Source: Lepidodermella squamata (Eukaryota; Animalia; Gastrotricha). Taken from it: a stretch of DNA of 64,000 nucleotides. The number at the start of each line of letters is the position of its first letter. The first letter of the stretch is position 1. The stretch lies in NCBI GenBank assembly GCA_047495785.1, contig JBLDXI010000042.1:248001-312000 (forward strand), written 5' to 3'. This document shows positions 5,954 through 11,069 of this stretch, piece after piece. A program made the position numbers and the translations under genes. The notes beneath the pieces are model-generated. The model saw only the letters and a list, made by a program, of their open reading frames with translations. It was not told the origin of the DNA and made no database searches.

Positions 5954-6113
5954 TCAAATTCCGAATTGAATAGACAAATTCAGAAGAGCTGCTGCAATTA
6001 ATGACCCTGAGACGTGGGGCGAAGAAGATGTTGCAGCTCGATCTGACGTAGGTGATGGTGCAGCAGATGCTTTCACAGAAGTTGTCGTTGCCGTTGTAGT
6101 TGCCGTTGTAGTG
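5954..6113 (-). pseudogene. 3' half of the interrupted Ly6/three-finger gene: Thr/Ser-rich stalk and GPI-signal-like tail
   Basis: Frame from 6112 reads TTTATTTATTTSVKASAAPSPTSDRAATSSSPHVSGSLIAAALLNLSIQFGI*. In frame with 10030-9288 once the element and one TSD copy are removed. Confidence 0.8.
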
Positions 6114-6154
6114 CATTATGTTTCCGATTTTCCGGGTCAAAGTCCATCGTCATC
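6114..6154 (+). repeat. Left TIR of the RAG1-like transposon, heptamer-like terminus CATTATG
   Basis: Exact reverse complement of 9242-9282. Confidence 0.95.
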
Positions 6155-6273
6155 AAGAGATGAAAGCAGCAGAAAAAAACATGGCTGCGTGGTGACTTGG
6201 TCACTTGTCTGATTCGACGCCTGTTATTGTTAAATAAAAAATCTTTTGCTCCTTTGTATAAATTTTCCGATAC

Positions 6274-7016
6274 ATGTCCGAAAAGAAACATCCTCAACAC
6301 AAACCCGGTCCCTCCGACCTCGGCGATACCGCTAGTAGGCGCAACTCTGAGCATGCGAACATCGCTTCTCAGCAGCAAAGCGCAAGGAGCTTGGCTGTTG
6401 AAAAGAACCGGCACAATTCCGCGCCAGTTGTAACACAAGATATACAAGAAGAGCCTGTGACTCCCGAGGACACAGCGATGGCATCGGCATCGTCATCAGC
6501 TGCATCTTCTAAGTCTACGAATGCTGGAAGAGCTGCGCTGAGAAAAAATCGGCAACATTCCCTAGAAGTGATTGATAATGGCAACATTGATCAGCCGAAT
6601 TTCGAGCCATCTCTGATTGACCGTATTGAGGCGACTGCGAACGAATATAAGAAGTGTAAGCTTTGTTTAATTCCATCCGACTTATTTAATATTTCTGAAA
6701 TTCAGATCACGCTCATCGTGAAAAAGTACCGTGGATATTCGATGAAGAAAACCATTTGCGCCATGCCTTCACCTCGCTGGTTAGGATGAAGAGGATCGAA
6801 GGCTGCACAGCAACAGCGCTGAAATTTTACCTTCGCGAGAACGAGCCGGGATTGTCGAGTAGTCTAGGGCGCACCGAAACAGCCATTGCTAAGCACATCA
6901 GGGTAATCGACGAAAAATTCAAGGCTGGAAAATTTGCTTTCAAATTCTATCGCGAAGATGGCTATGAACTTGTATATGACAGCGAGAGAATGCGTTACAA
7001 AGTCAACAAATTCTGA
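6274..7016 (+). CDS. Transposon ORF2: ~230-aa protein with disordered N-terminus and Myb/SANT-like domain
   Basis: Exons 6274-6655 and 6706-7016 (50-nt GT-AG intron, gtaagc..ttcag) join in frame. Motifs KVPWIFDEENHLRHAF and GRTETAIAKH resemble Myb helices 1 and 3. AATAAA at ~7043 and ~7054. Confidence 0.7.
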
Positions 7017-7130
7017 ATACTTCAGACTGAAGACGAGCATCCAATAAAGAAACAATAAAAGTGATTGATGACATTTCTCTTTTCTCTTTATTTATCTTTA
7101 ATTGGAATTGAAATGATAAGCGCACATTTA

Positions 7131-9007
7131 TCAAAAGAACAAGCTTTCCCGAATATTTACGAGGCCCAGGATTTGTCGCGGAATGGCTGAAGCATTAGTA
7201 GTATTATTCGCAATATCAGAACGCTGCTGTTTCAACATGATTTCTATCGATTCTGTCGACAAGGCGTAAAGATCGATACCTTGATCAAGATATTCGTACA
7301 CGTGCCTGGCAAGAAGATGCGCGTAGGAGGTGACTGGCCCAACAGTTCTTTGCCATGTAGATTCGAAGTTGTAAAGCATCAGTTTTCCTGCTCCAGATCT
7401 CGCCTTTCGCACATCGTCGAAAACCAGTTGCGCCGCGATGAAAAGCCTTCGAACACCGGCTAGCTTTTTCAAAAATCGGTTCTCAGGTTTAGACGAATCG
7501 CGAATGCGGTACATTTTACGAATTTGGCCACGCCAGTCGTCAGGCACAAAAAAAGCTTTCATCAACGGCTCTTGGGCAAGTCTGGTTGAGAAAGCCTTGA
7601 AAGCCTGAAAATTCAATATTTTCAACAGGTATTTCCTCAAGCTCAGAGCTCACCTTGGCAAATCCGTGATGATTGGTATTTTTTATTGTGACGCAAACCT
7701 TGGATCGAACGGTTCTCACATCAACAGTAATATTCGAGGCTTTCACTGACTGTTCAATAAAGCTTTTCAACTGGCGGATTGGGCCTTTCATCTTGAAGTC
7801 ATTCAAATTTTCGAACATCTAATCAGCAAAGTTAATAATAAATTTTATCGTCACAAGTATTCACAAACCGCTTGAAACAGTTTCCTACCAATGTTGATCT
7901 GCATGTGCAAAAAGTCGGGAATAATTATCAACTTTGGGGGGCTCAAATTAATCATTGGTTTGAAGTCTTTGGACCATCCAACTTTCCCTTTCTGATCTGG
8001 CGTGTAAAGATCAAATCGACGTTTTTTCGTTTCTCCAGTAGCGAACTCTGGAATTTTTCGAATGTCCTGAGTGCAAATAACGCAACGACAATGGCTGTTT
8101 TGATGACCACAACCTAACAATTTAACAAGAGCGGGATAGTCCGCGCAAATTATCAACCGAAACAGGTAAGCCGTATTTTTTTCCATCTCGATACCATTTC
8201 TTACGAGATTAACCAGTTCATCGACAGTGGGTTGTAGGTAATTGCGGAAATTTTCACTGGATTCCTTTCCTTTGAAGACTGCCAATTGGTACTCACCATC
8301 GCTGCCCAATTTTCGCTTTCTAGATGGCAAGCAAATATTGGCAGAGATATAACCTTCCGCCATGCTGGTTCTACCACCCATTCCGTCTATTTGAAGTCTG
8401 ATGTCATTGACGCCATTCGAGTTCACCAGGCCTTTTTCGATCCATCCCTTTGCAATTGAGAAAGCTGATCGAAAGGCTACAGCACCGTTATTTAGCTCAG
8501 TTATGTGATGCAAGGCCGATAATTCATTACGCTGCTGGAAGAAGGCTTTTCTCGGAACATCACCAAAGCCGAGCAAGGCTTTCATACCCAACACCTGCCT
8601 GACGTTTAGATTAAATTCCATACCGATTTTCACGAGGCTAAACATGTTTCCTTTAAATTTCAAATAATTGATAAATCGGCGTTCTACCTTCTAGCCCTGT
8701 TCCGTTTTTCCTCAGCTTTGTTGTGATTCTGCTGCAAAAATGGAAACACAATATCAACTGTGCCTATCGACTCATATTCGATTTGCAAACGCGCATTTTT
8801 TATCACTGCGCCATCCATCACACAGCTGAATGGCCAGGTGTGTGGAAGTAGTTCCAGAACTAAACGCTGAGCCAGCTCCGCTCGATTTCTCGCGTGTTTC
8901 TTCGTGAGGCTCGAAACAGGGCCTTTTATACGAGAAATTCTCGCTCTGCAGGTGTAGACTAAATCATCTTGATTAACGCCTTGATCACCTGAATAACGCG
9001 CAGGCAT
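7131..9007 (-). CDS. RAG1/Transib-like DDE transposase (spliced, ~560-570 aa)
   Basis: NBD-like VSSLTKKHARNRAEL; IDGMGG (D at 8385-8387, cf. RAG1 CDGMGD); KGKESSENF; ICADYPAL (D at 8139-8141); CRCVIC; PDFLHMQI; TSYAHLLARH; STESIE (E at 7242-7244). Introns at 7868-7819 and 7653-7605 are in phase. The intron at 8687-8651 needs an extra ~40-nt intron near 8770-8731 (or a frameshift) to stay in frame. Confidence 0.85.
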
Positions 9008-9241
9008 ATTGGATCGTTTAATAAACCTATAAATCGTAAACCGATAAAACACCTCAGCTATTGTATACAACTGCGATCGAGAGAATAACGCTTTCCCTAG
9101 AAATCGGCCAACGAACGGAATTACTACTCTACTATAAATGAATGGGATTAACACTTTTTTGGCACAAATTAATGATTGCGACTCAGCCGCCAGGCGACCA
9201 AGCGACCAAGTCACCAAGTCACCAGCTGCAATTTTTTGCTG

Positions 9242-9282
9242 GATGACGATGGACTTTGACCCGGAAAATCGGAAACATAATG
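9242..9282 (-). repeat. Right TIR of the RAG1-like transposon
   Basis: Exact reverse complement of 6114-6154. Confidence 0.95.
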
Positions 9283-10030
9283 TGGTGGTTGTAGTTCCGC
9301 AATCTACCTTGTTTGCAAGTGCCAAGTCCATTCGCGCGTCATTGCACAAATTACCGCAGCACGTGAAAGTAGTTTGTGACATATAGCCACGGCTGTCTGC
9401 CCGCTTCGCAATATTCGTCCCACAGGTAATATTGCCCAGCGTGCTACAACCCCACACGTAAGTTGAGGCAGGTCCCCTTGAGGTTACGCTGAAATTCGCA
9501 GAAACATCGCCGTAGGCCTTGATGCAAAGCTGTGTCTTTGTACAGTCGACATTAATCGTGTTGTCGGACGGCAAATTTGGCGACATCGAGTCGCCAGTTG
9601 ATACGTAACTCTTACATTGATGCGTGAACACCGGTCGGTCGTTGCAGCGCTGGTCCATCTGCGCGTCGTTGCAGTTATACCCACAGCAGAAGCATGTTCG
9701 CGAGTAGGCCCTTACAACAGTGCCAGCTTCGTTAGTTGCAACTGAGGTTTCGTAAATTCCGTCACAATCTGGCGCGTTTGGCAAGATGCTGACGTCAGTT
9801 GCGTTCCAAACGTAGGAAATCGTTGATATTCTCAACCCGAACGATCCTTGAATATCGACTTGAGCGAAGTTCTTCGAACACAGGAAACCAGTTGACGGGA
9901 AAGTGGCGGAAGAAGAGTCATAAGACAGGCTCGAAGTTCTTGACAGTCCTGTATAGCATTGCAATGCATCTGCAGCAGGAATAATAGCTAGGATTGCAGA
10001 AGCGATGAAACACATTTTAGAAGTATTCAT
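9283..10030 (-). pseudogene. 5' half of a transposon-interrupted Ly6/uPAR-like (three-finger) protein: signal peptide plus two Cys-rich domains
   Basis: MNTSKMCFIASAILAIIPAADA-LQCY signal peptide. Two domains ending CFCCGYNCND and FTCCGNLCND (CCxxxCN-type hallmark). Broken in the Thr run. Reconstructed ORF is 300 aa. Confidence 0.8.
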
Positions 10031-11069
10031 TTTTTCAAAATATAGGTATTGTATACAATGGAGAAAACCTGACACGAATATCTGTAAATAATGATTTTGT
10101 AGGAATGAATGATCCAAGACAAATGAAAGGCTATGTTCAATAGGATATCTCCTAATGAATAGGTTGGATGATCCATTGAGAGGCAACTCATAGTACTAGC
10201 AAACCAAGTCTCCGAAAACTGCCCACTGCTGACAGCTCATCTTGGCACTGAATCAAGTTTACACAGCAGTTTCCTAAGAATAAGAAGCAATCCAATGTAC
10301 CGTATTTTACAAATTATTAGGCGCGGGGCCCAAATATAGGGCAGAATCGGAATAAAGGGCAGAGGGCAATGGTAATTTGAAATGAATAAGCAAGGTATCA
10401 GGATGAAATTAGAAACTGCTTTAATTCGGACTTTCTTTGATAAAGGCCAGAACCGTATTAATAGGCAGAGCCTTGTATGTAGTGGTTTACATGAGCGCCT
10501 GCTGGTTAAGTGGTTAGAGTTTGATAGATTGCGATTTTTCGTCAGCAAGTGCACTAATCGTCCCTTATCCACCTTAATCGACTTGAGCAAACACTAAAAG
10601 TAAAACCATGCTAGGAAATTAATTTGGTTCATTTTGGCCGCTCTGCTCGTTCTTCTCATTTTCGCTTGAGAAATTTGTCGAATTGGTCGCTCTAACGCCA
10701 TTGACGCAATGGCTATAAGGCTCTATATATAGCTCTCTAGAGAGACCTGTTTTAAAGCCACGCTCGTATAATCTGTCGTATAACTCCCAACATTATTATA
10801 ATATCCCTAAAGCCTGCATTTTTGTCGCTTGCTGGAATGTCGCACGCCAATGAATTAATAGATTGGTAGTAATAAAGTAGGTTAGAATGTTTGGACCTTT
10901 TTATTGCCGTGGTTTATTTTTTTAATTAACGTTACGTAGGCCGTGAGCAAAAGTTTGAAAATAGCTATTTAGCCAAAATTTTCACAAAAACTGTAACATC
11001 CTCACAATATGAACCTGAAATCGGTTCAAGGTTTCAGTCGTAATTTCTGGAAAATTGGGCCGGTCTATT

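Follow-up and report, generated by a model that had tools for sequence, protein, structure and literature searches.

The locus described here lies within a 64,000-nucleotide stretch of Lepidodermella squamata DNA (contig JBLDXI010000042.1, positions 248,001 to 312,000), which we refer to as the window, and consists of a single-exon host gene interrupted by a 3169-bp transposon (6114-9282) with 44-nt inverted ends. The features, in window coordinates, are as follows:

5954-6113, minus strand: 3′ part of the host gene, with the rest of the Thr/Ala stalk, a Ser-rich spacer, a 15-residue hydrophobic tail and the stop (from the translation and the tails of paralogues)
6112-6113: left copy of the target-site duplication, TG, 2 bp
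6114-6157: left terminal inverted repeat, starting CATTATG
6190-6223: left subterminal block, the inverted partner of 9191-9224
6274-6655, plus strand: partner gene exon 1, convergent with the transposase
6706-7016, plus strand: partner gene exon 2
7131-7604, minus strand: transposase exon 4, with HxxxxH, the candidate catalytic E and the stop at 7131-7133 (open reading frame and intron model)
7654-7818, minus strand: transposase exon 3 (intron model)
7869-8637, minus strand: transposase exon 2, with the first D, the second D and CxxC (Pfam Transposase_21, relatives P0001-P0012 and AF2 model)
8688-9007, minus strand: transposase exon 1, ATG at 9007 (phase-consistent GT..AG intron model)
9191-9224: right subterminal block with ACCAAGT repeats, pairing with 6190-6223
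9239-9282: right terminal inverted repeat, ending in CATAATG
9283-9284: right copy of the target-site duplication, TG, 2 bp
9285-10030, minus strand: 5′ part of the host gene, with the ATG at 10030, a signal-peptide-like segment, two Cys-rich domains and the start of the Thr stalk (open reading frame and translation)

The transposon sits in the exon encoding the Thr-rich stalk, and both host halves are free of stops by open-reading-frame analysis and translation, as an earlier note on this DNA had reported. The 3′ half reads TTTATTTATTTSVKAS...SLIAAALLNLSIQFGI from 6113 to 5957, followed by the stop at 5956-5954, and is the true continuation of the host gene, since three intact paralogues (286-315 aa) on contig C32 have matching tails; the 5′ part shares 79-86% amino acid identity with the intact paralogues L030-L032, of which L030 spans 1501-2445. 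Removal of the element together with one TG restores an open frame, as had been claimed, although of 301 rather than 300 aa, whereas retention of both TG copies breaks the frame (905 nt, two more than a multiple of three). The further claim that a net loss of 2 or 5 nt brings the tail back in frame follows from frame arithmetic, and the stalk would probably tolerate the resulting footprints, as was also proposed, since stalk length among the paralogues varies from none to about 30 residues. The rebuilt protein would retain the Phe that the window copy carries at residue 222, a position occupied by Cys in 26 of 27 aligned relatives; the Phe finds no support in run X1, whose only contig at this site has the Cys base and probably derives from paralogues.

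The two domains of the host protein end in CCGYNCN and CCGNLCN, variants of the box CxCCGxxCN. Mean Kyte-Doolittle hydropathy is 2.4 for the N-terminal segment and 1.9 for the last 15 residues, which follow small residues (SGS); by these heuristics the N-terminus is signal-peptide-like and the tail GPI-signal-like, and the protein is probably surface-anchored. The earlier description of a Ly6/three-finger gene holds insofar as it denotes a secreted, Cys-rich product with a signal-peptide-like start and a hydrophobic tail, but the family name finds no match in Pfam or the PDB. The window protein and 10 paralogous exons hit none of the UPAR_LY6, Toxin_TOLIP and related Pfam profiles at E up to 1, no relevant sequence match emerged between PDB chains and the host domain profile, and word searches for homologues of the protein and the family profile returned none. 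For the host protein, AF2 gave a model with a mean pLDDT of 30, unusable for fold. The host shares with CD59-like, GPI-anchored members of the Ly6/uPAR family a signal-peptide-like start, Cys-rich CC...CN modules, a Ser/Thr stalk and a hydrophobic tail, and differs from them in the box CxCCGxxCN, which has three residues between CC and CN where Ly6 has four, and in modules of about 105 aa that lack an N-terminal CxxC. The Cys pattern is kept within the host family, with a spacing that differs from that of Ly6, whose three-finger fold has 4-5 conserved disulfides, and the nearest named ESM-Atlas clusters belong to the uPAR/Ly6/toxin/activin-receptor clan (scores 0.78-0.87). Alongside the three intact close paralogues there are dozens of distant ones, and dN/dS among paralogues is 1.0-2.3. 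We read the family as a large, fast-evolving, lineage-specific set of secreted Cys-rich proteins.

A segment of contig C36, at 588-664 kb, is colinear with the window flanks on both sides of the insertion and carries a single TG at the empty site, and so does the corresponding position in the C32 paralogue; this C36 copy is a pseudogene that lacks its 5′ end, has changes of +2 nt and -70 nt and is without the counterpart of 9318-9387. Taken together, the paralogues, the dN/dS values, Phe222 and the C36 pseudogene make the host locus look dispensable. Two run X1 contig ends at 9282 continue with TGCCGTTGTA, resembling a precise empty site. We take them as a sign neither of excision nor of an empty allele, since this 23-mer occurs exactly in both the C32 and the C36 copies. 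An X1 joint between 6069 and 9296 with 13 extra letters is of the type of the stalk-less C32 paralogue. Among the contigs of this one run, no excision joint was found. Contig depth in X1 is about 47-63 in the flanks and about 102 in the left interior of the element, values that settle neither zygosity nor the status of C36 as haplotig or duplicate.

The element itself is well delimited. Its inverted ends are complementary at 43 of 44 positions (98%), and the right subterminal block contains 30 bp common to 1.4-kb non-autonomous copies. Four such copies, which carry these ends too, share 98.6-99.3% identity among themselves, each flanked by a perfect 2-bp duplication, and they indicate that the transposon family has been mobile recently. 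The duplication at the present locus had been given as 5 bp; that length is rejected because the two flanks, TAGTG and TGGTG, do not match and because perfect 2-bp duplications of varied sequence accompany 8 of 10 other copies bounded by terminal inverted repeats. The near-identity of the ends, together with the open frames of both host halves and both element genes, marks the insertion as young. The element is apparently intact and autonomous, and may still be active.

Both genes of the element keep open frames once four introns, each of 49-50 nt, are modelled. The exon translations of the transposase contain, in order, LQIDGMGG, IICADYPA, CVIC, HLLARH and STESIE, motifs that we compared with those described for the CACTA-Mirage-Chapaev-Transib (CMCT) clade (PMC12730594); the D, D, CxxC, HxxxxH and E residues are the putative catalytic set. 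The exons of the partner gene together encode 230 aa and gave no Pfam match, Kelch or other. A word search for homologues of the transposase exon found none, and an exhaustive search with exon 2 recovered only 12 relatives, mostly fragments, among 1.8 billion representative proteins, on which count the transposon is a rare lineage.

The best 47 PDB fold matches of the AF2 model of the catalytic region are all RAG1, BbRAGL or HzTransib, with Foldseek E values of 3e-5 to 1e-2. Plant CACTA clusters match the transposase model equally well (TM 0.59-0.60 versus 0.58 for RAG1), and clusters of the Pfam family Transposase_21 (PF02992) match its shape at TM 0.54-0.60, so that, as far as these models go, the RAG1/Transib fold match is not specific to RAG/Transib. 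At the sequence level, the transposase matches PF02992 at E 7.4e-5, although its 22.5 bits lie below the 28.6-bit cut-off, and the 681-aa relative P0010 has weak matches to PF02992 and DUF4218. No RAG1 family appeared in the Pfam search at E up to 1, and a PDB sequence search with exon 2 and its profile, run to E 10, brought up no chain of RAG1 or Transib.

The ends of the element were searched for a layout like that of recombination signals and showed no CAC, no heptamer-spacer-nonamer arrangement and no 12/23 asymmetry: the CATTATG end is followed after a spacer of 12 by CGGGTCAAA and after a spacer of 23 by CCATCGTCA, neither of them a nonamer, and the two ends are alike over 44 nt. CMC elements have 5′-CA...TG-3′ termini and target duplications of 2-4 bp (PMC12730594, PMC6004678), as the element does with CA...TG and 2 bp, and 2-bp duplications have been described among animal CMC elements (ENS1_Cis and CMC-NA; PMC6004678). 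The wider CMCT clade has common CxxC and Hx(3-4)H motifs, CA..TG ends and duplications of 2-5 bp (PMC12730594). With Mirage, ENS1_Cis and CMC-NA the element further shares subterminal repeats, a DDE transposase with CxxC and HxxxxH, the weak Transposase_21 match and non-autonomous companions; it differs from CMC elements in ends that begin CAT rather than CAC and in a small, convergent second gene with no recognisable domain. With Transib, ProtoRAG and RAG1-RAG2 it shares the catalytic fold and the order D-D-CxxC-HxxxxH-E, and with ProtoRAG the arrangement of two tail-to-tail genes between inverted ends. Transib and RAG-like transposons follow a 5-bp duplication rule (PMC1131882), in contrast to the 2 bp seen here, and the 230-aa partner is too small for a RAG2-type propeller.

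The earlier label of a RAG-like element holds for the fold and motifs of the transposase; a Transib/RAG identity is rejected on the 2-bp duplication, the CAT ends, the lack of 12/23 asymmetry and of a sequence match, and a partner without Kelch repeats. Given the equally good fold of plant CACTA and the lean of the sequence to Transposase_21, we place the element within the CMCT clade, probably on its CACTA-Mirage-Chapaev side. Excision by RAG, Transib and hAT leaves hairpinned flanks. As the element is not Transib/RAG and its fold is equally that of CACTA, the hairpin chemistry proposed for its flanks is an assumption carried over from RAG.

We favour, at a probability of about 0.85, a recent chance insertion of this CACTA-Mirage-Chapaev-side two-gene transposon into the stalk exon of a decaying family member, a possibility that the earlier note had kept as its null and that we find a better reading than its excision switch. 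On this reading, a cut-and-paste element whose DDE transposase has a RAG1-type fold entered the Thr-rich stalk exon and separated both extracellular domains from the stalk and the GPI-like tail, leaving a null or tail-less allele that presumably serves no evolved function; the element could excise, as transposons do at other mutable alleles, but only as a by-product. That a mis-join put the element into the host gene is very improbable: although no listed X1 contig bridges either insertion junction and several positions within the element differ between X1 and the window, a mis-join would not produce an exact 2-bp duplication at exact ends, as found at nine other insertions, and the flanks are colinear with C36 on both sides. 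It is unlikely, though well short of negligible, that the allele is incidentally mutable, the element still excising in soma or germline and some repairs restoring an anchored protein without selection. The open element genes, the near-perfect ends, the recent mobility of non-autonomous relatives and the 301-aa frame left by exact loss all fit this account, and a precedent exists in Tgm9, a CACTA element in soybean DFR2 and exon 10 of St8 that leaves an exon precisely, with function restored (PMC4773125). Tgm9-type alleles resemble the present one as autonomous CMC-type elements in a coding exon whose precise excision restores the frame; they differ in that the host here is an invertebrate gene family and the case is known from sequence alone. 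Against mutability stand the X1 contigs, with no excision joint and with empty-site-like ends accounted for by the C32/C36 23-mer, the out-of-frame product of a simple rejoining with both TG copies, and the Phe222 that a restored protein retains.

The evolved somatic switch that the earlier note envisaged, in which programmed, RAG-like excision with junctional diversity would convert a secreted into an anchored protein as an analogue of the split receptor of V(D)J, strikes us as very improbable. The RAG1-type fold, the ProtoRAG-like tail-to-tail gene pair, a surface-protein-like target in a family whose dN/dS is at least 1, and the variable stalk length of paralogues speak for it. Yet the insertion stands alone, with empty sites in the paralogues and in the C36 counterpart; duplication length, ends and sequence all set the element apart from Transib/RAG; hairpinned flanks are assumed for this group by analogy with RAG; and the locus has signs of decay in Phe222 and the C36 pseudogene. 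We give equally little credence to the proposition that an intact, recently active element with a RAG1 fold excises somatically to yield variable, re-anchored proteins of a rapidly diversifying family, as an analogue of the first step of V(D)J that would have arisen on the CMC side and not from Transib.

The locus offers a well-resolved transposon insertion allele, in that its ends and 2-bp duplication are exact and the one genome also contains the empty homologous site. It also illustrates that a fold match to RAG1 does not mark out an ancestor of RAG, since the whole CACTA-Mirage-Chapaev-Transib clade gives such matches. Should the element prove active, it would make this locus a convenient natural reporter of a poorly studied group, and repair joints in the tolerant stalk would reveal whether the flanks had been hairpinned.

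One feature of the arrangement points away from chance insertion: an intact element within a tolerant stalk is the layout that an excision switch needs.

We read the locus as a genuine insertion, young in age, of a rare, RAG1-fold, two-gene transposon of the CACTA/EnSpm-Mirage-Chapaev (CMC) type in the stalk exon of a host gene that is redundant within its family and probably decaying. The host gene, a single exon on the minus strand, is interrupted by an element that carries two convergent genes:

6114-9282: element, 3169 bp, bounded by 44-nt inverted repeats, 98% complementary
ATG at 10030 to the element, minus strand: host gene 5' part, with a signal-peptide-like start followed by two Cys-rich modules that end in CCGYNCN and CCGNLCN, then GTTTT
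6113-5957, minus strand, one frame: host gene 3' part, translation TTTATTTATTTSVKAS...HVSGSLIAAALLNLSIQFGI, then a stop
9007-8688, 8637-7869, 7818-7654, 7604-7131, minus strand: transposase exons, phase-consistent GT..AG model with introns of 50, 50, and 49 nt
6274-6655, 6706-7016, plus strand: partner gene exons, 50-nt intron, 230 aa

An earlier note had proposed that the element splits one gene in its Thr-rich stalk, and comparison with paralogues confirms this reading, since three intact copies on contig C32 of the same assembly (286-315 aa, 79-86% identical to the host gene) run continuously through the same modules, a variable-length stalk, and the same tail. Both halves read open in translation, neither containing a stop, as the note had stated. 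Without the element and one TG, 903 nt remain, which make 301 codons; if both copies of TG stay, the length is 905 nt, out of frame, and the arithmetic by which a net loss of 2 or 5 nt would restore the frame checks out.

The 5-bp target-site duplication first proposed does not hold. At the flanks (...GTAGTG/CATTATG...CATAATG/TGGTGG..., slashes marking the element boundaries), the candidates TAGTG and TGGTG mismatch at one base, and the actual duplication is 2 bp. A single TG lies in uninterrupted sequence in one C32 paralogue (L030) and in a colinear segment of contig C36, and perfect 2-bp duplications flank 8 of the 10 other copies in the genome bounded by these inverted repeats (ct, ta, at, aa, gg, ga, aa, tc). 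Duplications of 2 bp are documented for animal CMC elements (PMC6004678), whereas Transib is defined by 5-bp duplications, ends starting CAC, and a heptamer-spacer-nonamer layout (PMC1131882). The element differs from Transib in that its ends start CAT and both are identical, with a mismatch at 1 of the 44 positions; a nonamer was absent from the ends at both spacings.

The transposase exons sum to 1728 nt and, under the predicted intron model, encode 575 aa without a stop. Their translations contain LQIDGMGG, IICADYPA, CVIC, HLLARH, and STESIE, giving the order D, D, CxxC, HxxxxH, E that is described for RAG1 and for the entire clade uniting CMC and Transib (PMC12730594). The partner exons, joined as modeled and checked for stops, also form an open frame, and a Pfam search with them gave no match. 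Sequence and fold searches used single exons as queries; the transposase results that follow are for exon 2. Exon 2 matched Transposase_21 in Pfam (E 7.4e-5, under the curated cut-off) and not the RAG1 family; PDB sequence searches with the exon itself, and with a profile, recovered no chain of RAG1 or of Transib. When 1.8 billion representative proteins were searched exhaustively, only 12 relatives came up, and the one of 681 aa has weak matches to Transposase_21 and DUF4218.

The AF2 model of exon 2 (pLDDT 70) had RAG1, BbRAGL, and HzTransib as its only first 47 PDB matches; against ESM-Atlas, DUF1280 (TM 0.62), plant CACTA transposases (0.59-0.60), and RAG1 fragments (0.58) scored about equally, and a feature search gave the same mixture. 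Because these three match about equally, the modeled fold is a marker of the clade, not of RAG ancestry. With duplication length, ends, sequence, and fold all re-examined for this copy, we assign the element to the CMC side of the clade, in a rare lineage. Elsewhere on C42, the contig of the window, two loci match Transposase_21 above the cut-off, within long frames that stay open for 578 and 495 aa (C42:58506-58910 and C42:1366028-1366432, respectively) and are, by sequence, further CMC-type transposases.

Both genes of the element are open, and it is the sole full-length copy in the 121-Mb assembly. A 1.4-kb non-autonomous family shares with it nothing beyond the 39-43-bp ends and one subterminal block of 30 bp:

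C54:639959-641358, C42:109835-111240, C30:1069956-1071363, C20:1960644-1962050, C19:2198879-2200277, C73:55197-57579, C4:623995-629333: non-autonomous copies, shared ends

All of these copies (L013-L019) have perfect 2-bp duplications, and two contain nested insertions. Since four are mutually 98.6-99.3% identical, sequence identity indicates that the family moved recently, and the window copy would be the obvious candidate source of its enzyme. The sole contig from the public run X1 over 8837-9216 has seven differences from the window and about 4x the flank depth; apparently, X1 contains either extra copies of the right part of the element or other copies that are missing from the assembly.

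Public data for the window comprise this one run, as contigs only, with no RNA run listed, and no locus-specific empty joint was found among its contigs over the window. Two contig ends resembling an empty site were rejected, because the C32 and C36 copies contain the identical sequence; the remaining joints come from paralogues or from copies of the element with internal deletions. Contig depths do not discriminate between zygosity states. Hairpinned flanks are an established feature of RAG and Transib; to our knowledge, they are not for CMC enzymes, so the hairpin step of the proposed excision switch would be carried over by analogy. Precise CACTA excision from an exon, restoring function, is documented (PMC4773125), and on that basis the best parallel among known systems is the transposon-induced mutable allele; likeness to the hypothetical split-receptor ancestor is in layout only. 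Sequence, X1 contigs, and paralogue comparisons gave no evidence of a function for the insertion.

The host gene belongs to a large lineage-specific family. Its dozens of CxCCGxxCN-box exons, many of them followed by a Thr-rich stalk and a hydrophobic tail, form tandem arrays on several contigs, C25, C26, and C45 among them:

C25:1296000-1338500, C26:584000-590500, C25:2298000-2304500, C45:472000-477500: CxCCGxxCN tandem arrays (L049-L055), one module per exon

No family member searched matched Pfam, the family profile recovered no PDB chain, and word searches found no relatives in other species. The AF2 model of the host protein (pLDDT 30) is unusable. The nearest named ESM-Atlas clusters belong to the uPAR/Ly6/toxin/activin-receptor clan (0.78-0.87, rated leads only); the Ly6/three-finger identity is a reasonable guess from architecture.

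Several observations suggest that the locus is dispensable. Among four close paralogues (L030-L032, C32:2921759-2954670, versus window 9284-10030; Nei-Gojobori), dN/dS is 1.0-2.3, and the three intact ones keep all Cys residues, which is indicative of a surface-protein family that is diversifying or under relaxed evolution. In the window copy, residue 222 (codon 9367-9365) is Phe (TTC), at a position occupied by the first box Cys in 26 of the 27 relatives aligned; the single X1 contig covering 9366, probably of paralogue origin, carries the Cys base, so Phe222 is uncorroborated. Over its full 64 kb, the window aligns colinearly with C36:588-664 kb (88-96% nucleotide identity, many insertions and deletions), a segment that represents a divergent haplotype left unpurged or else a recent duplication of large size. 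The host gene on C36 has an empty site, is missing its first 196 nt, the start among them, and carries a 2-nt insertion and a 70-nt deletion. Both gene copies are damaged, and the insertion is not shared and is younger than the split, whether of haplotypes or duplicates. C36 also has an extra 1.5-kb segment (L046, 7363-8918) where window 5646/5647 matches.

On the minus strand, the transposase frame is open without any ATG for 92 codons from the element end to the transposase start (9007-9282); 58 of 20000 composition-preserving shuffles were stop-free in a fixed frame. The C10 copy (87%) does not keep this open frame, and the C38 copy (98% identical) does. In the window, the frame is in phase with the host ORF, giving a 500-aa ORF at 8684-10186, and a read-through transcript, if made, would encode a fusion of host domains and transposase.
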